From NCBI GenBank assembly GCA_973895155.1, contig OZ316898.1:8481079-8545078 (forward strand): 64,000 nucleotides of DNA, in the 5' to 3' direction. Shown in pieces: positions 37,723 through 64,000 of the stretch. Position numbers and translations under genes: made by a program. Below the pieces are notes generated by a model that had not been told where the DNA came from, ran no database searches, and was given only the letters and a program-made list of their open reading frames with translations. Every line of letters starts with the position of its first letter. The stretch's first letter is position 1. Origin of the DNA: Marsupella aquatica. Its lineage: Eukaryota > Plantae > Marchantiophyta.

Positions 37723-38025
37723 AGGGACCTGCACCAGGAAGGAGAGAGGATTAAATCAGGGCCACAAAGTGGACAACCAGGGGCCAAGCAGATAATAATC
37801 AGAAAGCCAATTCACTACCCACAAAACCCATCCCACCCACACACATATATTCTCCACAACATTAGGGTGTGGAAGGGGGATTGAATGGGGACCTCCTAGT
37901 TCCAGGAAAATCCCCTAGCCAATTGACCTAAGCCAATTGGTTTCTTTATTGTTTTCTATCACATTGCACTCTTTGTTGATATGTGTATCATGTTAGCTCG
38001 ACAAGAAAATATAATACCCGTATAC

Positions 38026-41000: not shown

Positions 41001-42507
41001 TACATAACGGTAACCGCTATGGTCGTCTTTAAAAAGGACATAATAACAGGCTCCACCCAAACTTCTAACACTCATTGGGCCGCATACATCTGAGTGAAAG
41101 AACTCACCAGCTTGCTTAGCACGTTCATGAGAACTGGGGTTTGGGAATGTACGGCGGTGTTGTTTCCCAAGTACACATGATCCTTCACAAAATGGATCAG
41201 CAGGCTCTTTCAGCTCCGTAGGTAAACCATCTACTAGATTTTCTCTCTGCATCTTTTGTAGAGCTGGAAGGTTAGCATGACCACAATGATAGTGCCACAG
41301 CAGGATATTGTCAAGATCTGTTGTTGATGTCGTGGACATAACAGCATGTGCCTGACTAGATTGTTGAACCACCTCAAGCTGAAGTTTGTACAACTTTCCA
41401 TCTCTCCTGCCACTCAAAACCTCAACTCCACCTTCATCTTGAACACCACATCCATGTCTATGGTACGTAGTGATCATTCCATTATCAGCGGCTTGTCCAA
41501 TGGAAAACAAATTCCTCCTTAGCTTGGGAACGTAAAGAACATTCTGAAGAATACCAGAATAAACTTTACCTTATAGTCCTTTTGTGACAACTTTGATGTC
41601 TCCGCATCCTTCAACCCATAGCTGGTGGTTGTCGTCAACTTGTACTGACCATGTATGTGGCGGTACAGACCGAAATGTATGGAAATATGACCTCATGCTA
41701 GTCATGTGCTCACTTGCACCACCATCTGCATACCAAACTTTAGTATCGTTGTTGATGATGAAAGGACAGCAAAAGCAATGCTCTCAGTGGTGGAGACATT
41801 AGCTTCACTTTGTTGTGGCGTGATGTCATTGGCTGCACTCCTTCCGTTGTCGTTTGAATTGCCTTTGCTCCTACATTCTCGTGCCCAATGTCCCTTGGGA
41901 TTGTTGGAATTGGTCTTTTTCTTTTGATCAGCTATAGACCCTCTTCGGGACATTTTCTCAGTATCAGAATAGGCTCTGTTCTGATTACTGAAAAATGCCC
42001 TAGCATCATCTTGACTTACTGCCTCACCTGCCGGGTACAATGTCTCTTCCTTCAGAAGTCGACTTGTGAGCTTGTCAACTGTTTGCTGATCAGAAGGTAC
42101 ATTGTCCCAAGCTACCAACACATGTCGATACGATGCTGCAAGACTACAAATTATATTAGTGATAATTGTAGAATCAGTGACTGTCTCTCCCAAATCATTG
42201 AGCTGTCGTGCCATGGCCTCAATCTTGCTAATGTGAGTAGCCATATCATCTTCCGCCTGGAGCTTGTGCTCAAAGAATCTTTGTTGCAGCAAATGTCGAT
42301 TCTCTGCAGCATTCTGATCGTGAAGAGTACTAAGTCTTGTCCACATTTGATTAGAAGATTTACAGTTCACTAGGCGCTGTATAATCTTCTCATGAAGTGC
42401 GGCACAAATGTACATCTTCGCTGCCTTGTCCTTAGTGTTCCATTCTATAGTACTCGCTGCTGGAGCACCCGGAGCAGGCTTGGCTTCACTACATCAGGAA
42501 ATTGGTA
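38026..42507 (-). mobile_element. Degenerate Ty1/copia element 2: 3' LTR 38026-38475 plus RH-RT-IN-PR-gag, cut within gag at 42507
   Basis: LTR TGTTGG...TTCAACA; RH GFCDADYAAD/TEAEY/LADIFTK; RT YKARLVAKG/LYGLKQSSRTW; IN LRTDRGGEY/EQNGRAE; PR WYADGGASEHMT; gag. Multiple frameshifts; no 5' LTR in the window. Confidence 0.95.
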
Positions 42508-43210
42508 CCCATACTATTCAACAATGTTTCATGATGTTTTCATCACAATGTGTAAGTAGTGTTGATTTACACACAAAGTACTTCGACGATGATTCATCAT
42601 TGAAATTTTCAGCATTGAATGGGGTGTTTTGACCACAAATATTTTCCATGTTTAATCATTGTAGTGTCATCATGGATGACTTCATTACATTTTCATTGTT
42701 GATTGACATCACTTTTTATACAATGAAAATTCTGACAATGCTTAAGCATGGACTCATTGTAAAACCAACAACAATTTTCATCACATTTTCATTGTATTTT
42801 CAGCATGTGTTGAACGGGGTGTTCAACTTGGCAATAGTATCCAGTGTTCTTATGATGAATCATCATAAAATTATCATCATGGAACTAATATGGTTGTGGA
42901 GTGGACATCCATGTTGTTACATTGTTGAATCAGTATGTTAGAGTGGTTGAAAAGCTTTGATTTCAATGATATTTCATGGTGTATCCTTGAGTTATTCAAA
43001 TGGTGTCATCCATTATGCAATAAATTTTCAATGTTGTTTCCACAATGAAAAACTATATCATGAATCAATCATGGTTTTATAGTGCCATATCATGATGATT
43101 CATCATGGAATCATTGCAATATCATTGTTTTGTTAATGCGGAATTTGAAATAGATTTGCACTGTTTCATTGCCTTTATGACCATTTCAATGTCTAATCAT
43201 TGTCATTTGT
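42508..43210 (+). mobile_element. Putative left terminus and subterminal repeat region of a large CMC/Plavaka-type DNA transposon
   Basis: Abrupt switch from copia gag to CCCATACTATTCAACAATG, then ~700 bp of AT-rich CAT/ATG short direct and inverted motifs; a near-inverted copy of the first ~20 nt lies at ~42920-42938. Confidence 0.55.
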
Positions 43211-43571
43211 AGTTGGCATATTTTCACTCTTTCTCTTGTTGCGTGTAGTTCCCGTGAGTCTTCCTTAGCCACCCCTTCACCCACCCCTTCACCCACCCCT
43301 TCCTCTTCTCCCCCTTATTGTTTTGTAGTTAAAAAGTTGTTCATGGTTGAAATTATTTATGGACTATGGAAAAGACACACATGGAATGGACTCATTTTTT
43401 GGAGCCTAAATCAACGTAATAATAGAAACCAATGTAAAGCCAAACTGGGAGACATGGTCCCAATGGCAAAGCATCCCAATAAAGGGGGCAAAAAGGAAAA
43501 GTGTTCATTCAAGAATCTACAAGATGTAATCCACTATATCATGTGTAGTATGTCAACGAGTCTCCACTCAA

Positions 43572-45947
43572 CTAATCTACCAAAATAAGTAGTCTCTTCA
43601 TATCCCTATGAACCTTCTTGACCCTCTCCTCCATCTCCTGCATGCCTCTATGATGGAGGTTCATTCGGGAGGCCTCCATCACTCGGCCATCAATGGCAAG
43701 CTCAAGCTGCAAAGCAAACCACAATTAATATAAATATCAATGGGATGCTTAGTAAGAACTTTTAACAATAAATACCTTTTAACAACAAATTTTACTTACA
43801 TTATAAAGAAAAAATCCTGCTTGTCGAATGCTTATGGAAACCGGTTTTGCTTTGTCGTACCTAATGCCACTTAGAACCCGTGCTATGCTATGGTGAATAG
43901 CATGAGCCCCCCATGGGTCATAAGCATCACCATCCACATCCACCCTCCACTCCTTCGTGCGTTTCTGTTTTGCCAATCACTTTTCCACTCATTCATTTTC
44001 TCATTGTCTCCATCACGAGGCTTTGGTAAGCACAGCTGAGTGTAGAACTCTTCTCTTAATACCTTTAAAACAGAAGAAACAACCATAGTAAAAGGAGTTA
44101 GTCATTGCAAAAGGACTTGTTACTACATGGCTTGAACAAACGTAATTATAAAAAAGCGAGTTGGAGATCCGAACAAGAGTTTCTTCCGAAGAAACCTGAC
44201 GAGTATGAAGTTTCAACTAGACAAACAAAAAGTGAAGCTGTTAGCAACAAAATTGAAGCTGTTAGCAACAAAATTGAAGAAAGGGAACGCCAGGGGAGGA
44301 GCAAGCAATCAAGCAGCGGCTGCTCTTAGTGATTGAGTGGAGAGAGTCTGAATGATGATCAAGGCAAGAGAGCCTTTCTCTCGGGATGGTATGTATATAT
44401 GGATCTATGCAACCTGGTAGCAGACATACAAAAAGAATGAATGACTAAAGACGAGCAAGGCAGTGGTCGCAAATGGCCGAGAGGAGGGTCTGTTAGGGGA
44501 AGGCATGCATGAAGCAACAGCCCCGGCCCACAAATGTTAATGGGGCAAATGGTGCCTTGTTGTTGATACAAGACTGATCCCACTAAACATTCAACTCAGT
44601 AACATCTACTAGATGAATGAGCGGACATTCTAGAATATTCTAAGTTTCTCACCCAAAAGGAAGAAATACATTCAGGTCGATCTAGAAAAACAGAGATCAT
44701 AAGAAATGGACAAGGAGACCTTTGCTTACCAGGTAGCTCTCCATAATCAGCAAATAACTAGACAATGGTAAATTTGCAAAGTAACTCACCCTCAGGATGG
44801 CTCCTCTACGATCACGGATATTGTCATACACATGTATCATGATGCTGTTTTGGCCTCCCTTTCCCCACTCTATGAAAAACTGTTCCACCTCGTCCTTTTG
44901 CTCCATGGTGATGCCAAATGCCTCCAGAATTTGATGCACCAGATTAAGTTCAGTAGGGTACATAGTGCAGTGAACGTCACTTCCAATCAAAAAGGAACTC
45001 ACCACATCAGTCAACACTTTTGAAACGCACTCCCATCTACAATGTCGTGGGAGCTCTGCCACTTTCTGCAAGACACTCGTCTGGATCTTCTGCATGTTAG
45101 CAAGCGTGCGTTGATACTCAATCACTTGCTTCTTCAAGCTATCATAGTGAAGACGGTCAAATGCACCCGTAGCATCTGCCTGTCTACCACAATCACGTCC
45201 TGGAGCATCTGCCTGCCTACCACTATCACATCCTGCAGCATCTGCCTGCCTACCCCAATCACGTCCTGGAGCATCTGCCTGCCTGCCACTATCACGTCTT
45301 GGAACATCTGCCTGCATGCCACAATCACGTCCTGGGGCATCTGCCTGCCTGCCCCAATCACGTCCTGGAGCATCTGCCTGCCTGCCCCAATCACGTCCTG
45401 GAGCATATGCCTGCCTGCCACTATCATGCCCTGGAGCATCTGCTTGCATGCCACAATCATGTCCTGGAGCATCTACCTGCCTGCTAGAGTCACACAACCA
45501 ACAGAATACGTATCAAATTTTCACACTAAAACTAAAACATGTAATGAATAACACCAGAGCATAAATGTGCACACTAACACTAAATAAAATATTTGATGAG
45601 TAACATTGGCAAATATTAATAGGGAAATAATGCATGATAGCAAACCTCTCAGATGCTGAGGCTGACTGTGGATCATGTGGTCTAGTGCTTCGCTTCCTGC
45701 TCCGATCAGAACCACTTTGGCTTCCTAAACTTTTGCCATGCATGGACCTGAGGTTCCCAAACGATCGAGCAGGGCCTGGTGAGCTTCCCACTCTCTCTTC
45801 TGAAGCACATATGTCAACAATGGTCAAAGGGATCCCGGTAAGTGAATCTGGGTCTGTACTTGTATTCCTCTGGGATGACCTGATGGTCTTGTATGCTTCA
45901 TTGGGACCATTTGTGGTAAGCCTTCTCTTGAAAGGATTCATTGCCAC
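43572..45947 (-). CDS. Four-exon gene of unknown function with an 11-aa repeat; probable transposon accessory gene; one apparent frameshift
   Basis: Exons ~45947-45646, 45483-44790, 44062-43800, 43706-43572 with GT-AG junctions in matching phases; frameshift in exon 3 near 43978. Confidence 0.6.
45168..45485. repeat. 33 bp coding minisatellite, ~9-10 copies
   Basis: GGAGCATCTGCCTGCCTGCCCCAATCACGTCCT units encode RQADAPGRD(W/C/S)G on the minus strand. Confidence 0.92.
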
Positions 45948-46203
45948 ACCTTCACCACATCAATGTTATCACTTGTCAATTAACAGATACAAACCTAAAA
46001 GTACACAACCTCATAGGAACAAAAGCGCCTCATAGGAATAAAAATGTAATGCTCACTATACAAAATAGAAATTTCACTGCTGCTCAGTAGATAATCTAAT
46101 GACCAAACGGGATACTGGCAGGCAAATATATTTGATTAGCAGATTTTGCGTCAAATACATTAGGGAATAGAGAAGGGGCAAATGATGTAGAGATTGACGC
46201 ACA

Positions 46204-46692
46204 TTTCCTGAGGTGTCACAAGCACCGGCTAAGATAAAAAAAAGAACATTTGAAAGGATGTTATTTTATCAGCTCAATCATTTCATCTTGAAACAATTCT
46301 TCTGGGAAGCACATAGACGCAAAGGCCTCTTGTCAGCTTTAAGAGATCAAAATTCAGGACGTTCTACTTTCCCGGAGAAGAACTGATAGACAAATGTTTC
46401 CTGAGATGGGGTCAGAAGCACTCGCTACTACCAAGAAAGAACGCCTGAAGGGAGGCACTTTTATTAGCACAATCCTTTCATTTTGAAACAATGCTTCTGG
46501 GAAGCCCATCCTAGCAAAGGCGTCCTGTCAGCATTAAGAGATCAAATTCTGGAGGTTCTTCTTTCCGGGAGAGAACTAATGGACATTTCGTGAGATGCTA
46601 TCAAAAGCACTTGCTACTACGAAGAAAGAAGGCCTGAAGGAAGGTACTTTTATCAGCACAATCCTTTCATTTTGAAACAATGCTTCTGGGAG
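46204..46692 (+). repeat. ~190 bp tandem repeat, ~2.5 copies
   Basis: TTTCATTTTGAAACAATGCTTCTGGGA-like core at ~46281, 46476 and 46666; AAGAGATCAAA at 46340 and 46535. Confidence 0.8.
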
Positions 46693-49600
46693 ACTTCAAA
46701 TCAAAGGCAGGCAGGTTGGTTGACTGACTGACAGGCAGACTGTTTTTTGTGTCCCTGATTGCAGACAAAATACTCCTTCAATGCACAAAACCTATTTCGC
46801 TGGTAAGGATGTAAGGCCTATGTTGATTTGTTGAGAATCTCTCGATCTTGTCTACTTTGAAGACTTGTTTTGGATTTGTCTTTCGTTTAGTGCAATAAGT
46901 GCCCAATTTTGAACAGGTGAGAGTCTCCTACTCGCCGACAAAGCGGAAACCATAAACAGGGGCTCTGCAGATGATCTAATGACCAAACAGACTAAACAAA
47001 ACAGCCATGAACATACAACATGCGTACTCCACAAGACTTAACTTCTTCAGTTGGCAAAAATTTTGAATAGTCGAAGGGGCCAGAAGGTGGTTGTATCTAT
47101 TTACCCGAAGAAATTGCAGAATATTTGACCGACATTGCAATCTGAGTTTATTTTAGGGAGTTTATTTTAGGGTTTTCATCATGATTCTTCTAGCACTCTG
47201 GGATTAGCTGCTAGAAGAATAGTGTCCACCCTGGGATGGGCTGAACACTTGTAAATGAAAGCCAAAATGGTTTTAAAAGAAAACTCATTCATTAATTAGG
47301 AATTCAAACATAATCTAACAAAACCTGAATGGTTCAAGAACAGAATTACCTCCACTTGACTCACAAAGTTTTTTGTCAAACCAGCCTTGCAAGAACCTTT
47401 TGCTTTGTTTCACTCCTGCCGGTGTCGAAGTTTGTGGAACAGGTCCGGAGGCCCTTGTTTCTCTGCAGAAATGCACCCAAGACAAGGAAAAATGCAAACT
47501 CTACAAGAGGGTGCCACTTCTCACATTCGCCCGACTCCTTCTCCGCCTCTCGTCTCGCTGAATTAGCCAACTCATGCTATTTTTCTTCACGTTTGACACC
47601 CCCTCTCTATTCTCAATCCTTAACGCTTTCCACCATCCCTCTCCGTAGTGTCTGGGCACAATGTGTGCTCCTCACTCACACGCCCCACCCAACAAGCAGC
47701 AGCAATTGGCAGCATGGATTGGTTGGCGCATCCATCCACTATCCCACTGACTGCAGCCTGCTTACTCCTGCTTTACTCCTTACTACCCTCTGCTGCTTCC
47801 TCACTGTGCAGTAAACTTACTTGAATGGATTCGCCACTCTACTCAGCCCAAGACATAAAAAACAGTCAGTCATCGAACAAAACTCGAGGGAAAATATGGT
47901 TTGAGTCGATGATACAATTCTGTGAAAAAAATTTGTTCACAAGTATTCGGTGGATTGCTTCCGCAAATGAATATAGAATCGACAATTATCGAGAGCAAGG
48001 GAATTCAGGTAGACGTCATTGCTCCTCACCTAAGACGGAGGCATTGGCTGGACCATCAGGAGGTTGAGTACTCTTGCTCCACAGCGATGAGAAGCGAGGC
48101 AACTAATGATAGAGAGACGACTTTGGATTGAACGAAAGAGAGGAGGGGAGGGAAACACCAAACCTCCTTCCCTCTTCAACCTCCTTCCCCTCTCTTTGCT
48201 TTGCTCCTGTCAATCTTGAAGCAATCTGCTTTTGAACTACTGTTAGTCTGCGGCAGATAATTTCATGCCTGAGCTATGATTGATGATAGCAAGTTTCAAC
48301 AGTCACAACTCAACATTGTTCGAGCTTATCGCTGTTGCCTGGCCTTTCCTTCCTTGATTCCACGGAGCGGCCTTTGTCTATGAATTTACATCCGATGCTT
48401 CAAGTCGACAAGCTTTGAGCACATATTTTTGCAGTGTTGGGACATCTTCATAAGTCTAATGACTCCAATTATAGAAATTGAGCCATGGGATGCTCAGAAA
48501 TTGGGCAAAACCTCTTTGGCAACTGTTTTGTCACGGGAGACTTGTCGGGAGACTGTTAACAGGCTTGTCCTCCAGATCACGGACTTGTTCTCCAGATCTC
48601 ACCACCATGAGCAAGCGCTCCTTTTGTCACCTCCATGGTGACCTGCTCAAACAATGATCAGACTCCATGGCATCAACAAGATGAAATGCTCGAGAGCAAT
48701 AGCAATGTCTTTTGCGAGCCAAAAAGTAGAATTCCACAACGTAAAAGGAAGCGGTGTCCCGCATGACCTTTTCACATCAGACAAGTTTTTTGATTCATAA
48801 TGAATCAAACAAAGCATAGGAAATAGTGCAAACGCGCAGAAGGTCTAGACTTGAAACATTGTCGAAATGAACGCACTAAAATTGTCAAAAGCAAACACAT
48901 CACAATAGTATTTATCTAATAGAAATTTATCACTCAACCTGAGGTACACTTGCACAGATGATTGCATTCAGCTCAAGTTTCGAAGCATGCTTCAGCATCG
49001 ACCTGGATCATAGAGAATTGAAGCAACTACTTTGACTGGTTGGCAAATCAACAAATTAATAACACGTATGAGACCGTGTTCCACTAGCTACTTTGCACGA
49101 CTGCGGAATGCGCAGCCAGAACACAATCCTCCGAACCGTCCATACGCTAGAAAACTTGAGCGTCGTCAGGCAAGACAACAATGACGATGGACAGTTTTGT
49201 TGCAATGACAACCAAAATTGAACGCAAACAAAGTGGCGGAAAAATGAGCAGCAAAAGTTCCCTGGATTTCAACTAGCGCTTCCTTCTAAAATGTAGCACG
49301 ATGACCATACCACGCTCCAACTTGCCGTCACACCAGTGCTATTGCTCTTTTGCGGTAGATATCACCGGAGATTGCATCCTATCAAAGTTCGCAGCATCGG
49401 CAGTTCTTCACCTTCTTCCTATAATCCTCCTATGCGCTGCCCTCATACAACCCTTTGCCCTTCCATCCTTTTCTCAGCACGACCAAATGACCCTTGCGGA
49501 CATCTTTCCATGTTTTCTTCCTGAATTCTAAGACCCACATGCAATGCTATTTCTAGTGATTTCTCTTCATTGAAGACACATAGTTCAAAATGATTAGACC

Positions 49601-50724
49601 CCGCTTCAATTACAAGCCCCCTCGGTAACCATGGTAACTAACTCAGGTTAACTTTTGTCTACTTTGATGATACAATCGACAGAAACACCTAGTCAACCGC
49701 GAAGCACCAGTAGCTCAACATCCGGTGTACTTGCACCTACTCGCACGCACGTCCCTCCTGAATGGCGGTAGTCTACGTTCGAAGATTGAGGCAAGGAGCT
49801 TCTCTATATCTGCGGTGCAACTTTCTTCTTCTAAAGACTTGAAAGCTCTGGGGCTCTTCATCTCATTTAACTCCGGTCTGAACTTTCCTTCTTGCACCTT
49901 CTTTCGTAATCAAAGAATGCAGAGAAGAGAGAATAAGTCCAATGATGCGTGAAGAGATCATATAGCATTAGCGATACCCTGACTGATGCCTTCAAACAAA
50001 GGGCCAATCAGTCGTGCACCAATTGATGCTGGAGGCTCACTCTGCGATTGCAAAGCTTACGATCAGTAGTGTTGAGTACATAATTAACGCTCTTTAAGGG
50101 TGACACCCGCTCAATTTTGGTCTGTATCTCTGCGATGCATTTATTTGTAAGAGGTGCACTGGGCCATTACCAAGTCTGCACTCGAACAACAGAGTTTGCC
50201 CTTCAAACGAAGTTGGGTCGATTACCAAGTCGGAGTGGACAACAAAAGCTCCAGGTTCACTCTTCAATGGAGGCGTACTATCCGGTGATAATGTTGATTT
50301 ATCACTACATATGCACGAAACTGAACAGGATCGACGTTAATCATTCCCAGCCAGGTTCTCTAGTTCATTAGGAATGGTCCAAAAACTTATACAATGATTG
50401 TATAGGACTTGCAAAACTTGTATCCTGACCTCGTAGGAAAGGCTCAAATGACAAAGGGAGACTCATTGGGCAATGCAACCGTAGACAGTTCGTGACTGCG
50501 GTCTCCACCCTTGTGATCAAATCTTGAGCTTTGGGGAGGATTTAGTATATCAAAATCACATTGAGACTCCGAGTGAGACTAACTTAAATCAGGTCAATTG
50601 GTATTTACCATTTGCAACAATATAACAGGACCACAAGATTTGGCAATCATACCTTCTATACAGCACGGGGACTATGCCTGCTCGGTACACAACAATCTGT
50701 TGGAAAGCAGGTTGTGAGTGTTAA

Positions 50725-51420
50725 AGTGCTGCAAAGGGTAGTTGCACCAGCCACCAGCGTTGTTGGGATGCGCGTGGTTTTGGGGGCAGAAGTTGGTTGC
50801 GGTGATCTGGATAGAACGCTGGCCGTAGAGACACCATCTCTGGGAGTTGCATTTGATCTCAAAACAAGCTCCGCAACTAAGTCCATTGTCGAAGAGAGTG
50901 GTGCTCAAAGCTGTTGTGTGCGGGGCTGTGTGAGTCCCGTAACCAGTGTGGTAGAGATTCCCATATCCACATGCTCCACCTGATTTCATTTCAATCCAAA
51001 TTTACAAATTCAAGCATGTTAAGATCTTACTGAAAGCTGAGCAACCTCAGCTGGTTCTAGGCTGAAGACCGCAACTTAGAAATGACCGCTTCTTTCAATG
51101 CATCTCACAACGAGTTTCCAGGAATGAAATCTACAATTATTACTGAGAGGCTCCTACAAATACTTTAGTCCAGTCGATGTTGAATCAATGTGGTCAACCA
51201 CTAGCAGCACCTTAACCTTAATTGTAACTATAACTCACTTGCTTCTCGTAGTTTACAAAAGAAGATTTGTAAAATGCACCTTGTGTGCCTGTCGCGTCAG
51301 AGCCCCCATAGAATGTGGCATGGGCTTGTTGCAAGCCGTGTGCAGTGGTGAACATGTAACCCAGGCTCACAAGCGCCACCAAAAACAGCCTCGTTTCCCT
51401 CCCAAAACCGCACGACATCC
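50725..51420 (-). pseudogene. EXPA: Truncated alpha-expansin (exon 1 ~51420-51280, exon 2 50979-~50725)
   Basis: AHATFYGGSDATGTQG|[47 protein letters not shown] with the conserved intron 1 position; breaks off at the HFD motif, and the CBM63 domain is absent. Confidence 0.93.
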
Positions 51421-51737
51421 TGTGAGCCAGAGGAGGAAATTCAAACAAATTATTTTAAGCATGGTCGCTGACAGAGGCAAAATGTTCAAGCCAAACATGA
51501 AACGAACAATCCTGGGAGCTACGCCTCTGTCTTTATAAGAAGTCAAAATGTCGTATGTGAGTCTAGTCTTGGGTTTTGAGGAGCGGAAGTTTGAAGAGTC
51601 CTTTGAAGAGTCCCCCAAGATCTACCAATACATTGTCTCAGCTGAGATCACCTTCTCAACCTACTGTAGCAGCTCTCCTCGCGCAATGAAACCGGAGCGA
51701 AGAGATGCCCATCGGATCAAAACCAAGGGAGCCTGGC

Positions 51738-51930
51738 GCCAAGGCGGCCCGGGAGGCAAGGGGGAGCCCAGCAGCGAGGCGGCCCGGGAGGCAGCCGGGA
51801 GCCCGGCAGCAAGGCGGCCAGGGAGGCAAGGGGGGAGTCCGGCGGCAAGGCGGCCCGGGAGACAACGGGGGAGCCCCTGCAACAAGGCGGCCCGGGAGGC
51901 AAGGGGGGAGCCCCAGCTGCAAGGCGACCT
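51738..51930 (+). repeat. GC-rich ~36 bp minisatellite, ~5 copies
   Basis: CAAGGCGGCCCGGGAGGCAAGGGGGAGCCC-like units. Confidence 0.85.
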
Positions 51931-52632
51931 GAGGGGGCGGAGAGCCGGAAACCGGCCGCGGTACGCACGGGACCGGAAGCTGCCATCTTGCGAGTGCAGC
52001 CGAACAGAGGAGGTTTGCAACCAGTACACTAGCAAGTCTGATTGTAAATACGACCCTGAGTTGTGACGAAGCCCTTTTCCGCGATCGTGCCAGGCATGGA
52101 GGATTGCCCCCAAATCGAGTTCCCTTATCTTAGTGAGACCGAGCAAGGTGTCCGCCTTTGAACCACTTTTCTCAGTTGAGTGAATTGCGCAAACCCAATT
52201 CAGGTTAACCATTTTGCCTTGAATTTTCTCAGTGACATGTCTTGCGAGTGAGGTGACCAAATTTGGTCCCCGTTTTATTACCGGCGGAAGACCTTGCTTA
52301 GGTGAGTCTCTCAGATGACATGCTCATGTTTGTATTAAATCTCATCCCATCGAGTTTCTCTGAGACCTGATATGAGTAAGCCGACCGAATTGGACCAGCT
52401 TTCCCTGGCAACTGCTGATGTTTCTGAACTTCAATTTCGACTTTCAGTCTCTCTGTGACATTCTTTTCGAGTGAATTAACACAGAATTTGACCACCTTAG
52501 CCGCAGCCAGAAGGGAAAATCTAGGACTCCCTTTCAGATTATGGAGAGGGTGTAATAGTTTATACCAACAAGGCTTTCTCCTTACTCAAACTGGAAAATT
52601 AGCTGCTTGGTTGCTGTTCTAAGCTGTCGTTC

Positions 52633-53078
52633 AAAGAACCTTTCCATTCGGAGCAAGAGGGGGCGATGGCTCCATCTTCTTCTTCTTCTATTCTTGCTCA
52701 TGAACGTCGACATCATCGCTGGACAGCGGAACGGTCTTCACAAGTTCTTTGTACTTGAGAATGTAAAGCATCTCGAGGTAGCGGCGCGTTTCTTGTCGCC
52801 CGAGCTTGGAGACGTACTTCTAGAAGCTATAGACGCCAGCGAGGGTCATCAACCTCTCTGCGTACATCGACTGTATATGCACTCAAGTCCGGCATCTGAA
52901 AGGATCTTCCAGTAGTTCTCTTTGCTCTGGCACCGCTTGAAGAAGTCGACCATCTTCTTGGTCGCCTCGTCGCTGCGGTAAGGATTGATGTGGAATCCTG
53001 ATATCCCGTCTTCAATGATCTTTGCCGGTCCTCCGTGGCAGGTCGCAAACATTGGCAACCCGCACACCATTGCCTCTC
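52633..53078 (-). pseudogene. SUS: Sucrose synthase C-terminal fragment
   Basis: EAMVCGLPMFATCHGGPAKIIEDGISGFHINPY..LECIYSR, small deletion, then [44 protein letters not shown]; no introns within the fragment. Confidence 0.93.
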
Positions 53079-53326
53079 ACAACTTTTAGATGCTTTCTTA
53101 GCAGGGGCAAAACAAAATAATAGTGTTAAGAAATCAATTCCAGATTGTGAGATTGTGTCCATTGTAGATTAGTAATACTCCAGAAAATAGTTGCTTAGTT
53201 CCAAGGCATTATTTTTTACTCACTAGGAGAATGTTCAAAGATGAGATTTGAAGCGACTAAGAAGAGTCACGTACATAGAGTCACCTACATCATCAGCCCC
53301 AACGATTACCCAATTCTTCATTCTAA

Positions 53327-54364
53327 CTAGGTACTGATTTGTGACTTCCAAAGATTCTCTGCAAAATTAGCTTCATGACTAAAAAACACCACTCCAAATC
53401 TAGTCCCAGATGTAATGCTGGAGATTGAGTGTTGTAGAAGGGTTGATCGGAGAAATACCACGTCTCCAGGTTTCAAACCAAATTGAAAACCAAGCTGCGG
53501 AACTTGTAAATATCCACCTTCAAAATCTCCAAATGCTAGGTTTGCAACCCAGCCATCAAGAGCATCATCTTTATCTCTATGGGGACCAGCGTTGAGTTGT
53601 GTATTGATTGCCATCCCTAGAAAACAATTTCAGCTGGTTGTGTGCATCACAGATGCAGCTCCATTCCCAAAAGCATCAAAAAGTGCTTTGTATCTTTCAT
53701 AGTTCTGCCAATCAATACATTCATAAAGTGCTCCAACTGCCTGTGTAATCGGTGTAAATTTGTTTAAAAATGTTGAGACCAAATTCATCTTGTCCCCAAA
53801 ACCAATAATGTGTCGAGACAACACCGCAGAGAAAGTTTTACGACCAATTCCATGCCAAAATGCCAAATGATGAATCCCAGAGTTAAGAGGGATGTGTTTC
53901 CCCTTAAATCTCCCATTTGTGAGCGTTGGACGATTTGGTGGGTACGCTGTCACAAGCTCTTGAAGAGCTTCTAATCCTTGGAAGGTAGGGTCATTCTTGA
54001 AAGGTCTTTGTAGGGCATTTTTCAGAAAGTAGAACAATGGCTTATCATTAGAATCCTTAATGATAATATCTTCACCATGCCACACTGGTAGATCAACAAT
54101 GGAAAAGAATTGATGCTTTTGTTGAATCAAGTCTTCAACAGTGGTGTCGATTTTGTTTACCTGAAATTTTCCCAATAAAAACCTGAAAATCTTCCAAAAC
54201 CTTGGATTCTGCTCCCATTCGTAAGTTGCAGATGTTTTAGGTCGTCTAGAACCTAATCCTTCACATTTCTCAAAGTCTTCATCTCGCTTCCTCTTTCCAG
54301 GTTGCCCTGAAAAATAATCCACATTCTTTCGATCTTCTTTTACTTCTTTCTGGTTTGATTTCAT
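53327..54364 (-). pseudogene. TET/JBP-family 2-oxoglutarate/Fe(II) dioxygenase, ~345 codons, intronless, single in-frame TGA at 53632-53630
   Basis: ORFs 53630-54364 and 53327-53614 are in one frame (HTTS*NCFLGMAINTQLNAGPHRDKDD). HxDxxD, GDFEGGYLQVPQL, PGDVVFLRSTLLQH (distal His) and RFGVVFFSH (R-x5-aromatic-x-H, as in TET2 RISLVFYQH). Confidence 0.85.
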
Positions 54365-54466
54365 TTTTTTTAAATACTTGGTCCTAGTTGAGATGTACAG
54401 TTATACTCCCCTCAACTAGAATGTTAACGCAGTTACGTACACAGGTGACCAAGTATTTAAAAAAAA
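54364..54466. repeat. Perfect 20 bp inverted repeat with a nested 9 bp inverted repeat, abutting the TET/JBP start codon
   Basis: TTTTTTTTAAATACTTGGTC (54364-54383) / GACCAAGTATTTAAAAAAAA (54447-54466); inner CTAGTTGAG / CTCAACTAG. Confidence 0.85.
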
Positions 54467-54559
54467 CTGCAAAGAGAGAATTGAGTGAAGTAAACAAAGA
54501 TTTTGATTGTCCTTATGCGGATTGGATCACGCTAATCTATTCAGAACTCTGCAAAGATA

Positions 54560-54960
54560 AGTGAAAAAGAAAGGCTTTGTCAAAGAACAGATCACATAGC
54601 ACACAAACCAAAATCTATCGACAATTCTGCAAATCTATGTAGATTTCTACACAGCAACTGAAAAGAAAAGTTTTCGTAAAAGAACAGATCATAGAGTCAC
54701 TCCAACCAAAAGATTGTTCGTTGTCAGCCTTTACATAAAAAATGTGCATTAGCCTCTGTAGAGTAAACTTAAAAGCAAATTTTTGCAAAAGAACAGATCA
54801 AAGAGTCACGACCACCAAAAAAAATTGTCCAGATTTCTACACAAATAGTTGAAAAGGAAAGTTTTTGTAAAAGAACAGATTGAAGAGTTACTCAGACCAA
54901 AAGATTAATATTGTTCGTTGTCAGCCTTTGCATATAAAATTGCATTAAACTCTGTAAAGT
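54560..54960 (+). repeat. Degenerate ~95 bp tandem repeats upstream of the TET/JBP ORF
   Basis: AAAGAACAGAT core at ~54582, 54678, 54788 and 54870; TTGTTCGTTGTCAGCCTTT occurs twice. Confidence 0.7.
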
Positions 54961-57900
54961 GCCAGACTTTGTACAGTGTTGGACTTTGCATGAAAGAATG
55001 AATGAAAGACAAGAAACTGACAAGCTTTCTTGGGAACTGATGGTCCACTTAGGGCACAAAAGAAAACTTCTTGGAATAAGCAATATAAGTACTTTGTGAA
55101 ATGGATTCTGAATTGTTTCCTTCAAGCTTTTCACTTGCAGGCTGTGTGGAATCTAGCTTCTCAATAGCCATAGCTATAGATGTCGGCCCCACTGTATTCC
55201 AAGCAACATCCTTGTTGCTTTAATTTGATTCTCTTCCAAGTCTATTACGTCCGTAGTCCTCTCCAATCTGCTAAGCCCTTTTGAATTAGTCCTCTTTGAC
55301 TTTGCTGAACCTTAGAGATGCTAAATGTTTCCAATCCCCGTAGCCATACTAGTGTCTCACATGGCCCCACTATTCTATGGTGTCTGGCCCCACTATTCTA
55401 TGGTGTCTCACACTTATATTTGCCGCACACTGGTTTTTGCTCGCCATCAATAAAGGCTTCACTTTAGACACTTGAGCATTAATAAAACTAGACAGTTGAA
55501 CGCTAATAAAACTAGCCTGATTACCCGTTGAAACCCGTTATTTTACCTTAGATAAAGATGAAGGCAAAATAAAATCTTCCAAAAAAAATTAATTCTATGG
55601 TGTCTCACACTTATATTTGCTGCATCCCGCATTTTGCTCCCCTTGACTTTGTTCTTATTTAAGAGTCCAGTTGTGTCCTTATTTGGAGTTATGGTAAATT
55701 GGATGTAATTTGGATCATCCTCAACCTTCAAATGTTTTTTTTTAATCAATTTTTCAAATGCAAAAACAAATTTTAAGTTTCTGTTTTACTTAAAGATTTG
55801 CATGAGAAGCAAAAGATTTGCATGAGAACATTGTTGAAAACCAAATCAGGGTAAAAACGTTTTTCAGCACAAATACCAACACATGAAAGTTTGATAGTTT
55901 GAAGCGCGCGCTACTCTCATTAATTGTGGTCTGTGCTAGTCTACATTAGGCAGTTCTGTTATCTTCAGCTACACACTCAAGAACTTTGCATGTAACACCC
56001 AAATGTCTAGACCTTTATGAGGCCAGGAAAGGTGAAGTGACAGGTGCGTGTAATTTTTAAGGAGATAAATAAGAATTGCTTTTTTGAAGACAAATGTTAT
56101 GCTATGGAGTAGTTTACAGGGTAAGTCTGCAATCAGTCTACAAGGGCCAGTTACCTTCCAGTTTAAAAGTTCCTTGCTAGTTTAAGGATTTGCGTATAAT
56201 GTTTTCAGGTTCAGGAATTTAGTTCCAATATGCCAGTTATGGACACCTCATTTATTATATTATATTGTCGCCACATATAGGGGTTTCCAAGTACATGGGT
56301 TTGCGTCTGTTCGATTTGTCCACTGACGTTGGAGATCACTCACCTCATTACACACCCCCGTTGGAGATCACTCACCTCATCACTCACCTCTTGAGGTCAG
56401 TTGGGGTGAGCAGCAGGTTCTTGTTATAGGCTGGTTAACTTCTGCGGTTCTGAGTGTTAGTGACCTGATGTGTAGCTCTCATCAACGATTTGCAGCATCG
56501 ATTGCTCTGGTGACCTGATTTGAATGCTGTTGGCTGAGGCGAGTTGAGGCGAGGCAAGGTGAGAGAGGACAAGGAAGGAAAGCAGTGAGCATGTGTCTCA
56601 ACTTTTGCCGCGGAGGTCCGCCAGGCACCATCCAGGACCAGGTTTCCGCTTTGGTTCGATTCGTTCCCTTCTCGAGGGAGTGGGAGTGGCAGAAAGGGTT
56701 GACTGCTGCTTCTCTTTGTTGGACGGGATCCACGCCTGTGTGTCTCCCAGGTAATGCACTGCGTCTCTTATCCCTCTCTTCTCCTTGTGTCTACTCTTTC
56801 AATCTCCTCTATTCTCTACTATACGCCACTGCACACTAATCTCCTTCTGCTAAGGATTTGCTAGGTCAAGTTCAAGTTCCAGGCCACCTTAGATATGGGA
56901 GCTAACTGAGTCAAGCTATTGAGGTCTGCGCGTGAGCAGATCAAGAGAGTGTCTTCCATTTCTACTGGATTAGTAGTCTTGATCAACCAAGATGGCAGGC
57001 TCCCGTATTAATTCGTAGGTTGACCATCGATCCTTATCTAACAGCAAAACTGACAAACTGTGTGCCTCCTGCGTCTAAAGCTATAGCTGCAGTGGAATTG
57101 ATAGTGGCCTTGATGATATTGCCCAAACGCGCGTGTCAATGTGAGCAGACTATTCCTGCAATGCAAGTGTAATATGTCTGGCTACTGTAGAGCTCGAGTA
57201 CACTATTGTAGAGCAGGTCCATTGAAGAATTGATACTTGAATGTGTACAATCTAGAGAATGAATCAGATAAGTAATCATACTAGATTCGTTCTGCGAGTT
57301 GCCACGACATACCTCAATAAGGGCTCCGCATAGGACAAGTATTAAAAAACAAGTAGCTAAGTAAGCGTATAAGAAATTAAGGGAGCTTGCCTACTGACAG
57401 AATGCTTTCTCCTAAGCCTTGAATGAGGGGGAGAGTAATTTAATTGTTATTACAAGGATTGATGGTCAGTTCCAGCCAACCGGTATGAAGTTTTGTCCTA
57501 CAGCTTCAATTCAATGAACTTTGGTTCACATAGTTACATGAGATAAAAAAAACATAGGTTGCCTGATTACCAAAGACTAGCATTGCACTTCAAGCTCCCT
57601 TCCACTCAACGGAGTATATTGTCCTGCAGGTCAGCTTGTCAACAACATTGCAAGGGAGGCACCAATGTGGCATATATTGCACAGGAGGCTATCAACCGGA
57701 CAACTCGTCAAAGAAGCTCTGGTCAAAATGCAAACTATCCCCAGAGTTCTTGAAGATAGGTTAAGACTTTTCCTGGTGCGTAAGTGCGACGATGTCTGCT
57801 TACGCAGAGCTAAATATCCATTTCAGTTTTTTTTTCACTTTAGCACGGTAAAGATTATGAAGAAAGCTCGGGTCCATACATCTCAGCCCCAAGCAACTGT

Positions 57901-58833
57901 CCGCCTGAGAACATCGACGAATCCTTGTGGGAGCCATAAGTCTAAAACTCTAATTCCACTGAACTGATCCGCAAAGTGGAACACCGTGGATTTCTCTTTG
58001 TCACTATCTATTTGGCACCCGATGTAGCTTCTCTGCTCATGATCGAGTTTGCATTTCAATGAGCCGCCAAGGCCCGAGTAGTTCGTAGATGATTGTACGT
58101 AGAAACGGAAGTACTTGTACTGCTAGGCGACGATAATTTACCTCCCCCATGAGAAGTTCTCCAGGAGGTGTAAGGAGAATTCAAAGATGGAGAGCAAGAC
58201 AAGGGGGAAGCGGAACCCAAGCAAATGTTTGAGTCGGGGGATTGCTGGAGTGGCAAGCAAGTAATCAGGCAACTGAGCAGAGTTTAGCGACAGCTAGAAA
58301 GCAGTGGAATGACCGAACAAGACAAAGAAGGAAAAGAAGGAAAGGGAATGAGAACGGAAGGGGCGAAAAGAAGTAGAGCTTTGATTTGTTCGGCGGAGCG
58401 GGGAGTGGCAGGCTAGCAGGTTTGAACAGATTGAAGCAAGCAGGAGCGGGGCAGAGATAGAGCGCATGATGTTTCTTTTTCAATAAACATTATGGAAGAT
58501 TATGTGATCAGCAGATCCTGGATTTTTCATCCCTTGAAACAATGAGTATCATGCTTTGAATTGCAGCCATGCAAGCGAAGACGGATGGTAGCAAACAAAC
58601 TTTAACAAGGAAGCATAGAGAAGGCAAGGAAAGGATAGGACAGAAGTGAGTGTCGTCGGTGGTCTCACAATGTCGCATGGTAGACTGAACGATATCTTCA
58701 TTGCTCTCACCATTTCAGTTTGCTTTTGCGCGCGGCTCAAAGCATGGCCAAGGATGCTAGGGGTTATCGCTATTGTGGACCATTATTTATCGTAACACAG
58801 TTGTACTAAACTTTTGTGGCATTTGGTGTGCAG

Positions 58834-59131
58834 CTCATGGAACTGAATATGCATTTGGAGCTCATGAGCAATCCTCCAGTGGAGTTTTCAAGGTGGAGCC
58901 AAAGAATTGTCCTGGATTTACCGAGGGATTTACTTTTAGAAGTAGAATTAAATATGGTACTACCGACATGACCTCTCAAGCATTTTGAACCTTTATTCAA
59001 ACCTGTGCGGACAATTACAACGGCGACACTTCATCTCATTGTCAGGAACTGCAATCATTTTACCAATGGTATTTGCTACAAATTGACAGGAAAATATATT
59101 CCTTCTTGTGTCAACCAATTGGCTAGAGTAG
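58834..59131 (+). pseudogene. Isolated exon of a PPPDE/DeSI-like peptidase gene
   Basis: AG..GT-bounded HGTEYAFGAHEQSSSGVFKVEPKNCPGF..FRSRIKYGTTD..YNGDT/HLIVRNCNHFTNGICYKLTGKYIPSCVNQLARV, with the catalytic NCNHF motif; one stop and one frameshift. Confidence 0.9.
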
Positions 59132-60337
59132 GTATTCAACTCTCTCTTTCAGTATGAGCAGTCAGAGTGACAAATCCATTGTGCTTGCGTTGACTTGCTT
59201 TCTTGCATTTAGTCTGGGTCACTGGTTAATCTTCGTCCATGCGAACTGCACAGTAGTCATGGCCTTTGGGAATAATTTGTAAAGATCGAATATAAGTTTT
59301 GCCCTGATAGCAGGTTTAGAATCTGACTGTTGTGGGTTCAAATCTACGTCATAGCAGAAATTCCATTTCTCTTGAAATGACTGCAACAAAGTGGCTTTCT
59401 GCTGGGGCTGATCCATGCTAAACGAGATGCCCCTCTTTGGTTTCTCATCTTGGCATCTTGGATTTATTTGTTGAGACCACTATAGTGTCTCTATCGGAAT
59501 ATGATTTGAAATATACATAATCACTTCATTTGTGGTTTGCAGGCCCCAACACAAATTGAGAAGCTGATTGCAGAAAGAAAACTCTATGCTACTGTTCAGC
59601 TTCGTATTCAATCCATCAATATGTAGGATAGGGACCGAGGGGATTCAATCTGTAAGTCAGTCGTAGGAGTGTCAGATCCCCATGTTTTTAGAGCATCTGC
59701 ATACCTAGAAGAGCAAGGGGCATCGTCTCCTCACACCAGCACAATTTCTCACGTACCTTGGACGTGCAAAGTTGTACCTTTGACTTTGCAAACTTGTACG
59801 TGCAAAGTTGTACCTTGGATGTGCAAAGTGTGCAAAGTTGCATTGTGGCCTAGACAAGGATTCTTCCAACACCTTCTTAACAAACTTCAGTAGTGTCCTG
59901 AGATTATGGATTGCAGTCGCAGTCCTAAGAAGTTTGTCTGTTTCCACATGTGCAGTGAGAGGAACAACATGGAGAAGTTGGCGCTTGCTGTTGTCTCACA
60001 TCTGCCTACTTCCATTCTTTACATGCATGATTTAACTGGAGAATGTGGCTCGTCAGCTGCTAAACAGGTGCTAGCTGACATTATGATTGGAGGTATTTCA
60101 TGCCAAGAGACCCTTGTTGACATTTTTATGTTTATGTTGACTTGCGCGCTGTTGTGTAACTATCTCAGTCTCTACTTTGATAAATCCCACTAGTCTGTCG
60201 TTAGGGAGCTGTAAACTATGTTGGATGTTTCAGTTTTAGTGTGTATTTGAGAATTAGTTGATTTGATTTCCTGATTGTTCTGTTGGCTCATTCACTGTGA
60301 TCATGTGTCCAGTGCAGGGGTTTTAGTCACTGAAACA

Positions 60338-63300
60338 ATGATGGTTTATGATTGTGACACTTGTGGGTGTATTGGTTTTAGAAATCCTGGGGCCCTAGCT
60401 TCTCATAAGACAACCAGTCGAGCATGTAAACTTGCAGCTAAATGTCGCAAGGAGAGTAATGATGATGTGAGATCTCAAGTAGGTGTCCAAGAACAACCTT
60501 CTGGTTTTGAACCTCAAATGGCTCATGAATATATTAGCATGATAGATCCATTATATTCTTCTATGAGTACGCCAGTTGCCAATCATGTGGAAGATGTATT
60601 ATGCACTCCAGTAAGTGAATTCTACAAAGCTAGTCAACCAGCAGATCGTTTTGATTCCACATTACACCTTGTAGCCTTCATTCGACAATGTAGGAATACT
60701 ATGGGACTGTCTATGAAAGACACTAGAAGACTATTAAGTCTTCTCTTCCATACAGAGTTCTCACTCACAAACATAGATGTGAAAAATGTGAGTGACCTTG
60801 TCAAGTATGAGAAGAGAATTGCAAGTACTCACACTGTTACATGGAAGCAAGTGATAGTTCGCCCGAAAGGCTTCCATATACCGGAGCTTGTGCTACATTA
60901 TCAAGATCCAGTGGATGTCCTGTGTAGACTGTTTTCGAACGTGAGTAACAAAGAGAATTTTAAAGTTGGTCCATCCCAGCCAGGTCTGACAAGATGTTAC
61001 AGAAGTCCAGACACTGGAGATTGGTGGAGACAAATGCAGGTGAGGACCCTTCAGTCTTCACTGTGCACTTATGTCAGTGAGTTTCGAATGGACTTCAGTC
61101 AACGGTGTACTAACCTTTCATTTTCCTTTGACACAGGATAAAATTGATGAGAAATGTCCTGGTGGAGTCATCGCAGCAATCATACTTTATTCTGATCAAA
61201 CTGGGCTATCAAACAACCAGAGAGTATCTGGTTATCCATTAATGATATCGCTGGCAAATATTGAGTGTGTCGGGAGGCGAGAGGAGTCGGGTAATGCTTT
61301 GCTTGCAATTCTTCCCACGTATGGAGCTTCTGATCCAGACTATACAAATTCTAAGCATCCTACTCGCCTCAAGATCTCTTTACTCCACAAGTGCTTGACC
61401 ATCATATTGGCGCCCTTGAAGGCATTAAGTTACACGTAAGTGACATGCAGTTTTGATGAAGATGCCAGTCTTGATGACACATGTACTCTTATCTATTGAA
61501 ATTCTGAAATTGTATACCTCTAATGCAAACATTCTTTTGTCCAGTGGTTTGCCCTTGGAAGATCCTTGGGGATGTCAAAGATGGGTGTTTCCTCTTCTGT
61601 ATGGATATGTTGGAGATCATCCAGAAACCTGCAAAGTGACTTGCACTTTTGATTCAAATCGCTGCAATTTCCCCTGCAGTGTTTGTGTATGCCCTAAAGA
61701 ACAGCTTAGTGTTGTTACAGTCACACATGAGTATCGTACTCAGAATCAAATGACAAGTGTTTATAATGAGATGGTTATGGCATCTACATGTGTGACTGAT
61801 GAAAGGGCGAAAAGAGAGTCTGTGCATCCTGTCCAGGTATGCTCATTTTGTATGGTGTTGAGTCTGTCAATCTTGTTGCAATGCTTTACCTTTTTACATG
61901 TCTTTTTCTTGTATCCTGACATCACATTAAAGCCGTTGTTTATATCTGCAGTGTGCGCTTTGGGGATTTTTTGGTGGAGAGACCATCTTAGGAAATCCTT
62001 ACAGATCGGTGCATCCAGACAAGATGCACCAGTTTGAGTTAGGTTTGTTCAAAACTTTCATTGGAATTTTGAAAGATATGGCAAGTGAAACTCCTAGAGT
62101 TACTTTTAAACAAAAGCCACTTGAGATCTTGGATGAAAGGATGACAGTGATTGGAGATAACCATCGATATCCAGAGTTCAGATTACTGGCATGCAAAGGA
62201 AGGACAGGCTATTTCACATCTAGTGCAACATTTCAAGCATTCGAGCACAGATCTGTGCTTCAAGTTATCATACCATTGTTATTGGGAGTCTATCCAAATA
62301 CTGTCGTCCAAGTTGCTATTAGCATGTGGAAATGGTATTCTGTTGCTTTCAGGACCAACGAGCATACAGAGGAGACACTTTCTAAAATGGATGCATTAAT
62401 GTCTGAGTAAGTATCTTTTTGATTTACCTTGCTAAAAGACATGTTGGAATCACAAATGATGTTTATGATGAATTCATTTTAACACCAGACTTAATTTTGC
62501 AAGATACTAATGTTCATATTTGGTTGTTCATAGGATGGTGAGGAAATTGATTACTGTTGTAGGGAGATATCAAAAATCAGAGTTTGAGATTGTTAAGATT
62601 CACGCAATGAATCATCTTTCTGACTCCATTAGGAGATCTGGGATTCCGTGTGAATATTCTACCAACCTGTACGAGCATCTGCACATTTTGTTAATGAAAA
62701 TTCCATACCGTGCTAGTAACAAGAAAGATTTTGCAAAGCAAATGACCCGGCATCACCAGAGATTGCTCGCTATTGGCAGAAAGACTTCTACATCCGTCGA
62801 GGTTGAAGTCTCTCATGATAGGGAAACAACCTTGGACAAAGTATGTTTCAAAATGGATGCAAGATGCATGTTGAATTTCATTTGTGCAAGGTTTCCATAA
62901 ACTTTGAACTCATTTGTTGGCCAGGTATAAGCAGCTATTTTGCTGTGATTTGCAGGTGTGAAAACAGGAGAAAATATTCTCATGGGCTCAAGAATTTGCT
63001 TCCAAATGGAATGGCTACAAAGGCTTCCCGAAGACATACCTTCAAGTGGAAGAGAACTGTTACATGCACAACCAGAGATCAAAGCGAATCTGATAATCAC
63101 TCTAGAAACGTACTCTAGAGAAAATGATTTACAGAAGTTGAAGGTACACATTTGTCTTGTGATATTGCATTTATTTAACTACAATTGTCAATGACATCAA
63201 ATATTAAGCTTTTAGACTCTTTGGCTGCACATTAACATATTTATCCTTCCCTCTTGGATGACAGGTACTTGAAGTGAAGAACGGGGTGGCTATCCCAGCA

Positions 63301-63741
63301 GGAGTTGGAGAAAGACTTGCAGACTGGCCTATGATTGCCCGGGCAACACCAGCATTCCATGGGAGTCCATATTTTAGCGATGTGATGATTCAAATGGAGG
63401 CAGAAGGGGATGAACCCTTGACTGAGTATGCGCAAATGAGATTGCTATTTTCGTGTGAAGTCGCTTCAACTAATGGAGATGTTGGGAGGAGAGAACTTGC
63501 TTTGGTAAGGTGGTATGATTGCAGCAAGAGACCAGAAAGAATTACTAGTTGTGTCATCTTCCGACCTGTTTCTGAAATTTTCAATGTGCAGAGCTCAAGA
63601 GATTCTTCCTCTTCAAGGAGACGGCGTAGAGATCCCTATGCCATCATTCCCATTGCCAACATCCTAAAAGCTGTCCAGCTAATTCCGTATTTTGGCATGG
63701 GGGAGCAAAGCCAATTTTTGGTGAATCATTTTAAGTTTTGA
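60338..63741 (+). CDS. Plavaka-type (CMC-related) DDE transposase, 7 exons, ~906 aa
   Basis: Exons 60338-61039, 61137-61435, 61545-61836, 61952-62406, 62534-62840, 62956-63143, 63265-63741. N-terminal CxxC..H..C finger; TGDWWRQMQ; IILYSDQT..YPLMISLANI; YVGDHPE..CSVC; DKMHQFELGLFK; KIHAMNH..IRRSG..STNLYEHLH; RATPAFHGSPYFSDV. One 1-nt phase mismatch at the exon 5/6 junction. Confidence 0.88.
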
Positions 63742-64000
63742 ATTTGCAGCAGTAGGGAAATCATTGTTGTGACCTGTGAAGGGATAGCGGTAGGTTTAGC
63801 CCGTAGCTGGGTCTTTCACGGATCCTTCATCTTTGCACCTGATCAGAGCAGTGTCGTTGTGCCAGGAGATCATGTGCAGGTTGGGGCTCACTGTCTTCCC
63901 ATAAACCTTATATTCACACTTTTTGGATGTGTAGGAAAGGAAGACTCAGGCTCTCTTCCATGATTTTTTTGTTCATTTTTGTTCATTTTGGCTGTGAGGC

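Follow-up and report, generated by a model that had tools for sequence, protein, structure and literature searches.

A candidate giant Plavaka transposon with a disabled TET/JBP gene in a copia retrotransposon of the liverwort Marsupella aquatica

Genes and features of the locus

We analysed a 64,000 nt stretch of the genome of the liverwort Marsupella aquatica (assembly GCA_973895155.1, contig OZ316898.1, positions 8,481,079 to 8,545,078 of the forward strand), referred to here as the window and numbered from its first letter. At position 42492 a copia long terminal repeat (LTR) retrotransposon is broken off, and the DNA that follows begins with a Plavaka-type transposon terminus and contains a TET/JBP dioxygenase gene and a Plavaka transposase gene. 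We propose, with a probability of roughly 60%, that the terminus, the cargo, the TET gene and the transposase form one mobile element. The features on which this argument depends are listed below, each with the evidence that defined it.

38026–42491, minus strand: copia LTR retrotransposon with its 5′ part missing (3′ LTR region, reverse transcriptase, integrase and partial gag), the interrupted target; Pfam and comparison with an uninterrupted copy.
42492–42509, plus strand: left terminus of the interrupting element, beginning CATCAG, PlavakaB-type; loose ends of contigs in runs X1 and X4, and published termini.
42501–43250, no strand: subterminal repeat field of short motifs in both orientations, for example TCATTGT/ACAATGA and TCATCATG; motif density.
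42492–44163, no strand: multi-copy part of the element; depth and contig pieces of 85–95% likeness in organisms A and B (defined below).
53330–54364, minus strand: TET/JBP dioxygenase gene, intronless, 344 codons, collinear with homologues of 330–380 aa; Pfam, HMMER and alignments.
60341–63741, plus strand: Plavaka transposase gene, six exons, 842 codons with no internal stop; Pfam, splice-site scan and metagenome contig L001.

The insertion site and the left terminus

The interrupted target was recognized from minus-strand open reading frames (ORFs) between 38.5 and 42.4 kb, whose Pfam matches (Retrotran_gag_2, gag_pre-integrs, rve and RVT_2) follow the copia order. Its 3′ boundary at 38025|38026, with TATAC and a TG start, was judged against an uninterrupted copy at 24453–24553. 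The flank at 37097–38025 is a diverged copy of 23762–24518, and both flank copies are identical up to ...CCCGTATAC, after which the window continues TGTTGG... and the other copy ATATCATC...; the alignment with the uninterrupted copy bears out the boundary at 38026 and the TATAC that had been named in the original prediction, a first reading of the sequence alone. At the broken end, the gag match begins at profile position 44, with approximately the first 43 positions missing, and the translation upstream of the gag ORF reads ...SEAKPAPGAP... and then stops. No second LTR and no resumed piece of gag was found elsewhere in the 64 kb window. The earlier statement that copia is cut in gag and does not resume within the window was correct, and only the position of the cut, given as 42507, had to be moved, as contigs put the junction at 42491|42492.

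This placement comes from Logan contigs of four runs, which were compared with positions 41800–47700 at 85% likeness. In two of the runs, referred to as organism A, 70% of the region's words are present, and in the other two, organism B, 10%. Contigs of other copies, from both organisms (runs X1 and X4), match the window rightwards from 42492 and are unlike it before 42492, where the flanks disagree among the copies (agreement only 0.61–0.65). The exact contig from the copia side stops at 42492, and none of the Logan contigs listed spans it with 31 nt on either side. These two observations would also suit a reading of 42491|42492 as a false join of the assembly, or as the trace of a rearrangement or deletion that came later, and not as an insertion site. 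However, unitigs are expected to end at repeat edges, and the break falls to the base on a canonical transposon terminus, unlike a random misjoin; we consider an artefact or rearrangement of this kind extremely improbable.

The sequence from 42492 reads CATCAGGAAATTGG, and the five bases at the contig-defined junction are CATCA, which would be met by chance about once in 1000 per position. PlavakaB elements have the termini 5′-CATCA..TGATG-3′ together with TSDs (duplicated target sites) of 2–3 bp, and the TET-carrying Plavaka all fall in PlavakaB (Kojima 2025, PMC12730594); one of these, Plavaka-11_AB, begins CATCAG (supplement, PMC12730594). As the contigs fixed the boundary independently of the motif, the agreement with CATCAG strongly indicates a Plavaka terminus at 42492. 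As candidate TSD we note TA or CTA, at 42489–42491. The interrupting DNA had been suggested to open with a terminus of the Plavaka kind, in agreement with the published PlavakaB terminus; the proposed opening itself, CCCATAC at 42508, lies 16 nt inside the element, by the divergence of the contigs. The predicted right terminal inverted repeat (TIR) was likewise wrong, as the corrected left start CATCAG implies a right end of ...CCTGATG. It should be noted that CACTACA, at 42487, overlaps the junction and was considered as a CACTA terminus; we rejected it because the point at which the copies part is 42492, where the sequence agrees with the published terminus of Plavaka.

The subterminal repeat field that had been described behind the terminus proved to be real, both by motif density and as the top 8-mer score of the window. 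Motif density within 42501–43250 is 44–60 per kb, against 4.2 per kb across the window, and the edges of the field are sharp, with 0 per kb at 42251–42500 and again at 43251–43500. Five 7-mers have 118 matches in the window, 29 of them within the kilobase of the field. The scan for 8-mers in both orientations, in which the field scored highest, gave no second peak from 43.4 kb to 64 kb; motifs become slightly, but not significantly, denser in the final 250 nt of the window.

Other copies of the terminus exist, each with flanks of its own, and multi-copy depth extends over 42391–44163 in four runs of the two organisms. Minus-strand ORF pieces with a frame change lie inside this multi-copy end, at 43572–44086, and have no Pfam match. 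An outward-facing spliced gene had been read into 43.6–44.1 kb, where we find only these ORF pieces, with their frame change and without a family match. As a separate observation, a 48 nt piece at 43440–43487 reaches an extreme abundance in each of the four runs, at a summed depth of 1800–4900, with dozens of contigs breaking on both sides of it; the piece may be a very short dispersed repeat or the core of a miniature inverted-repeat transposable element.

The Plavaka transposase gene

The transposase gene was identified by matches to the Pfam family PF18759 in three consecutive ORFs that lie in different frames (profile positions 18–102, 99–197 and 201–287, contiguous over 18–287; E values of 5e-13, 4.8e-9 and 1.4e-3, respectively), and the Plavaka transposase of the original prediction is therefore real on the Pfam evidence. 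A splice-site scan placed canonical GT–AG introns of 97, 109, 115, 127 and 424 nt exactly at the ORF transitions. The resulting exon model is as follows.

60341–61039, 61137–61435, 61545–61836, 61952–62406, 62534–62840 and 63265–63741, plus strand: the six exons of the transposase gene; GT–AG model.

The model is least secure at the fifth intron (424 nt). All transposase searches were run exon by exon, and the exons were joined only for a count of codons and stops. The same blocks of exons are seen in metagenome contig L001, at 49–66% identity, and in the relatives P0001–P0004. A set of 5.8 billion proteins of fitting length contains only four relatives of exon 1, of which the best is 84% identical, and a metagenome scan with the N-terminus of the transposase found nothing. 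An exact-protein look-up with the last ORF of the window likewise had no hit. CSVC in exon 3 and HPDKMH in exon 4 are present in the expected order (the clade motifs C(2)C and H(3–4)H are listed by Kojima 2025, PMC12730594), and the D, D and E residues were placed by eye. The transposase gene looks intact.

The TET/JBP gene

The TET/JBP gene comprises a 244-codon ORF (54364–53633) and a 95-codon ORF (53614–53330) in the same frame on the minus strand, with a TGA and five codons between them. The two pieces were searched separately. The residues after the stop match Tet_JBP with 39.8 bits, against a Pfam cut-off of 34.9, and this piece has 600 relatives at E≤1e-3 (HMMER, 1.84 billion representatives), of which those looked up carry PF12851. 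The best relative, P0005, is 344 aa long and is 62% identical to the piece after the stop; its N-terminal 253 residues are matched by the first ORF at 38%. A search with the 244 aa ORF gave no match in a protein collection that lacks the proteins of this genome itself, and ESM Atlas was uninformative on this N-terminal part. The alignment with relatives is collinear over the whole length, and we therefore regard the gene as full length and intronless but with one nonsense codon.

The in-frame TGA, at 53630–53632, stands where relatives mostly have Arg (..TTSRNCFLGM..), 17 codons before HxD, and a CGA-to-TGA change, such as methylated CpG produces, would fit. The iron/2-oxoglutarate (2OG) motifs PHRD, QH and TRFG align with PHKD, KH and WRIG of NgTet1, and the columns of the HxD...H triad and of the 2OG-binding Arg are invariant or nearly so (alignments A2 and A3). 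The TET/JBP gene of the original prediction is thus genuine, with Tet_JBP above the cut-off and an E value of 1.6e-8 with NgTet1; the in-frame TGA had been missed. As its sequence stands, this TET copy is disabled by a single nonsense codon ahead of HxD. Because the TGA precedes HxD, an enzyme from this copy would be impossible without read-through, and the idea that the element has an anti-silencing enzyme of its own cannot work from this copy, as the gene stops before the HxD motif.

The characterized enzyme with which the gene can be compared is NgTet1 of Naegleria (PDB 4lt5 and 5cg8). The C-terminal 74 residues of the TET gene align with NgTet1 (E 1.6e-8 for 4lt5), with HxD, the distal His and the Arg kept, whereas the N-terminal 244 residues match no PDB entry by sequence and the closest full-length relatives are uncharacterized proteins of 330–380 aa. 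Named relatives, at 45–47% identity, come from metagenome-assembled genomes of lichen-associated ascomycetes (Watsoniomyces and Peltula), and the closer relatives are metagenome proteins.

Some observations on the surroundings of these relatives are recorded here for their own interest. In L003 (2850–4436; also in L004, L010 and L012), the P0005 gene and a 528-codon ORF with a JmjC-like cupin motif stand tail to tail, and the gene recurs at ~100% identity in several soil-type metagenomes. A further TET relative, in L005, adjoins an XS-domain gene.

The DNA between the terminus and the transposase

The following features lie between the subterminal field and the transposase gene, in addition to the TET gene.

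44697–45947, minus strand: two ORFs without a family (266 and 144 aa); ORF list, with only a weak, repeat-driven Pfam match.
50675–51001, minus strand: fragment of an alpha-expansin gene (DPBB_1, profile 1–56 of 83); Pfam.
52852–53076, minus strand: fragment of a group-1 glycosyltransferase gene (profile 111–165 of 172), 250 nt downstream of the TET gene; Pfam.
54562–54940, no strand: repeat of ~100 nt in four copies, upstream of the TET gene where the sequence is AT-rich; repeat scan.
58761–59154, plus strand: PPPDE/Peptidase_C97 gene fragment, split in two (profile 40–86 and 101–139 of 151); Pfam.
59894–60190, plus strand: fragment of a NOG1 GTPase gene (profile 1–35 of 58); Pfam.

A Pfam scan of the 96 ORFs of 43.3–60.3 kb yielded, apart from TET, only partial pieces of four unrelated host genes, so the host gene fragments that had been reported are present. 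No second transposase family was detected among these ORFs, and no LTR pair, TIR pair or other element boundary was found inside 42.5–64 kb. The 266-codon ORF (44697–45497, minus strand) carries nine 33 nt repeats (45106–45526), which encode an 11-residue unit of the type GRQADAPGRDW in its first half. Its non-repeat C-terminal part is also found in organism B, and ESM Atlas was uninformative on the protein.

The composition of this interval bears on whether the TET gene arrived independently, in a different transposon nested inside or beside the Plavaka, as fungal TET genes are carried in Helitron, hAT, Zisupton and other elements. TET genes do occur in many transposon superfamilies (Kojima 2025, PMC12730594), and the gene studied here is intronless, unlike the transposase, with the ~100 nt repeat just upstream and the glycosyltransferase fragment just downstream. 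Against this, the TET gene is not enclosed by any TIR or LTR pair (terminal motifs such as Helitron 5′-TC...CTRR-3′ were not searched for), and the 96 ORFs offer no second transposase family that could have moved it. We judge an independent arrival of the TET gene to be very unlikely.

Other repeats were observed in passing. The AT-rich sequence upstream of TET has a further local repeat, of ~197 nt, at 55395–55642. A GC-rich tandem repeat of ~36 nt, in five copies, occupies 51732–51913, and the long overlapping ORFs that cover it on both strands are probably no genes. To the left of the copia junction, degenerate plant-telomere-like repeats (TTTAGGG variants, in units of ~25 and ~50 nt) lie interstitially at 21181–21759; such TTTAGGG-like arrays count among the plant-type features of the window. 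Long direct repeats of 96–100% identity pair 1365–4822 with 30948–34429 (spacing ~29.6 kb) and 10447–12843 with 34505–36910 (~24.1 kb); these direct repeats represent one large unit, or more than one, that was repeated.

One element or several

We propose that a large PlavakaB-type cut-and-paste DNA transposon inserted in the gag gene of the copia element. This transposon would run from 42492 at least to the end of the window, and would thus be at least 21.5 kb long. It would contain the ORFs without a family, captured fragments of the four host genes and the TET gene, with the six-exon transposase gene near its right end, and the 750 nt subterminal field would presumably supply the binding sites of the transposase. 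Plavaka is a member of the CMCT clade (CACTA/EnSpm-Mirage-Chapaev-Transib), and from what is established for that clade, the DDE-type transposase would excise and reinsert the element by way of its CATCA/TGATG ends and subterminal repeats. An intact TET copy would oxidize 5-methylcytosine, presumably on the DNA of the element itself, and so counter silencing by methylation. The same anti-silencing proposal was reportedly made by Iyer and co-workers in 2014 for fungal transposons that carry TET. It has also been put forward for the TET passenger of these fungal elements by Kojima (2025, PMC12730594).

Several considerations were counted in favour of a single element, among them the contig-defined terminus, the repeat field that starts at it and the open six-exon model of the transposase. 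The window has a single Plavaka transposase, 17.8 kb rightwards of the terminus and in a compatible direction, and no competing boundary stands between the two, which we count for unity. The two ends of the stretch have in common the lowest observed/expected CpG ratio of the window (0.38 at 42–46 kb and 0.36 at 60–64 kb). The mosaic of partial host-gene fragments is of the sort found in gene-capturing DNA transposons of the CACTA type, and giant Plavaka of 17–19 kb are already on record from a red alga.

The unity of the element is nevertheless unproven because its right end lies outside the window, and several observations weigh against it. Some of these suit a composite locus, in which 42492 to ~44160 would be the terminal piece of a short or broken Plavaka copy, the transposase would derive from another, possibly truncated, copy, and the TET gene and the fragments would be resident transposon-rich DNA that moves with neither. 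Only the left ~1.6 kb (42492 to ~44163) is multi-copy; of the DNA that follows, the next 2 kb (44164–46330) has a depth near single-copy in organism A and is nearly missing from organism B, in which 44734–45220 and 47119–47512 are present again. The CpG signature of the interior differs from that of both ends, with an observed/expected ratio of 0.65–0.71 at 48–54 kb, above either. At the loci checked, no Plavaka was seen beside relatives of the TET gene. DNA transposons also tend to hop locally, and two separate neighbouring Plavaka pieces are possible. The composite locus is opposed by the interior itself, which consists of partial gene fragments and no whole host genes, and by the stretch of 43.4–64 kb, in which no further terminus, repeat field or boundary was found. 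We regard a composite locus as possible, although somewhat unlikely.

The remaining points against a single element concern its ends and its copies. The right terminus, its TSD and the rest of copia lie beyond 64000, and no inverted copy of the left terminus is present in the window, whether the 19-mer of the original prediction or the corrected 18-mer, itself unique, is used. The copia junction is unbridged in the Logan contigs listed, as described above, and the Logan contigs of the four runs contain no second copy with the same cargo. Co-occurrence of TET and Plavaka, which had been proposed as a check, was not observed in public contigs. Of 13 loci retrieved for TET relatives (L003–L013 and one Logan place listed without DNA), 11 carry a TET relative; tblastn found no Plavaka exon in L003–L009, where the contigs are mostly short (L010–L013 were outside the search), and the genes listed for one further Logan place include no Plavaka family. 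Because the contigs are short and partly fungal, the lack of Plavaka near these TET relatives is no evidence against a linkage in this plant. Taking both sides together, we favour the single Plavaka element.

A more far-reaching reading is that liverworts hold a giant Plavaka family, still alive, whose members bring along a TET/JBP 5-methylcytosine oxidase of their own, in a gene lineage common with ascomycete fungi and possibly acquired by horizontal transfer. We consider this reading doubtful and offer it as speculation. The general view is that TET enzymes are lacking in land plants, which use glycosylases to remove 5-methylcytosine. TET-carrying transposons have been described only in fungi (PMC12730594), and our literature search found no paper that links TET/JBP with bryophytes. 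What is new here is the host group, a land plant; the kind of system is already known. If the proposal is true, the combination of Plavaka and TET in a liverwort would extend transposon-borne anti-methylation to land plants. The value of the finding is limited by the dead TET gene of this copy and by the uncertain unity of the element.

Comparison with known systems

Several known systems resemble parts of the proposed element. Plant CACTA/EnSpm elements capture host gene fragments, and VANDAL Mutator elements carry an anti-silencing gene. The locus described here is like these elements in its subterminal repeat field, its mosaic of partial host genes and its possible self-protective passenger gene. 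It differs from CACTA/EnSpm in the terminus, which is CATCA and not CACTA, and in the transposase family, and it differs from VANDAL in the proposed mechanism, which would be base oxidation and not a hypomethylation factor of the VANC type.

The closest comparison is with the TET-carrying PlavakaB elements of fungi, which are known only from Agaricales: Plavaka-11_AB of Agaricus bisporus, and Gymnopus confluens (PMC12730594). Common to these elements and the window are a PF18759 transposase with CxxC and Hx4H, a left terminus CATCAG, and a TET/JBP gene within the stretch. The host here is a land plant, as indicated by the expansin fragment and the plant-type copia, and the insertions in fungi measure ~7–10 kb (PMC12730594, supplement), against at least 21.5 kb for the candidate element. 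Also unlike the fungal elements, the stretch described here has five transposase introns of 97–424 nt, host gene fragments and a disabled TET copy, and membership of its parts in one element is unproven, with the right end beyond the window.

The giant Plavaka of the red alga Bostrychia moritziana measure 17.4–19.1 kb and carry the accessory genes PAG1–3 (bioRxiv 10.1101/2025.02.11.637652). They resemble the candidate element in being very large, in belonging to Archaeplastida, and in a chromatin- or DNA-modification cargo in which one gene has a 2OG-oxygenase domain. The accessory genes of the red alga include PAG3, a ParB-plus-oxygenase protein, whereas the accessory gene here is a bona fide member of TET/JBP; moreover, no homologue of PAG1 or PAG2 was seen in the window, and the family here is low-copy.

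Finally, Plavaka transposases have been reported from streptophytes, including a moss, and the same study interprets Plavaka as having mostly disappeared from land plants (Spirogyra pratensis genome, PMC13519894). The Archaeplastida Plavaka of that study have no reported TET cargo, whereas in the window an apparently intact Plavaka transposase gene adjoins a TET gene in a land plant.

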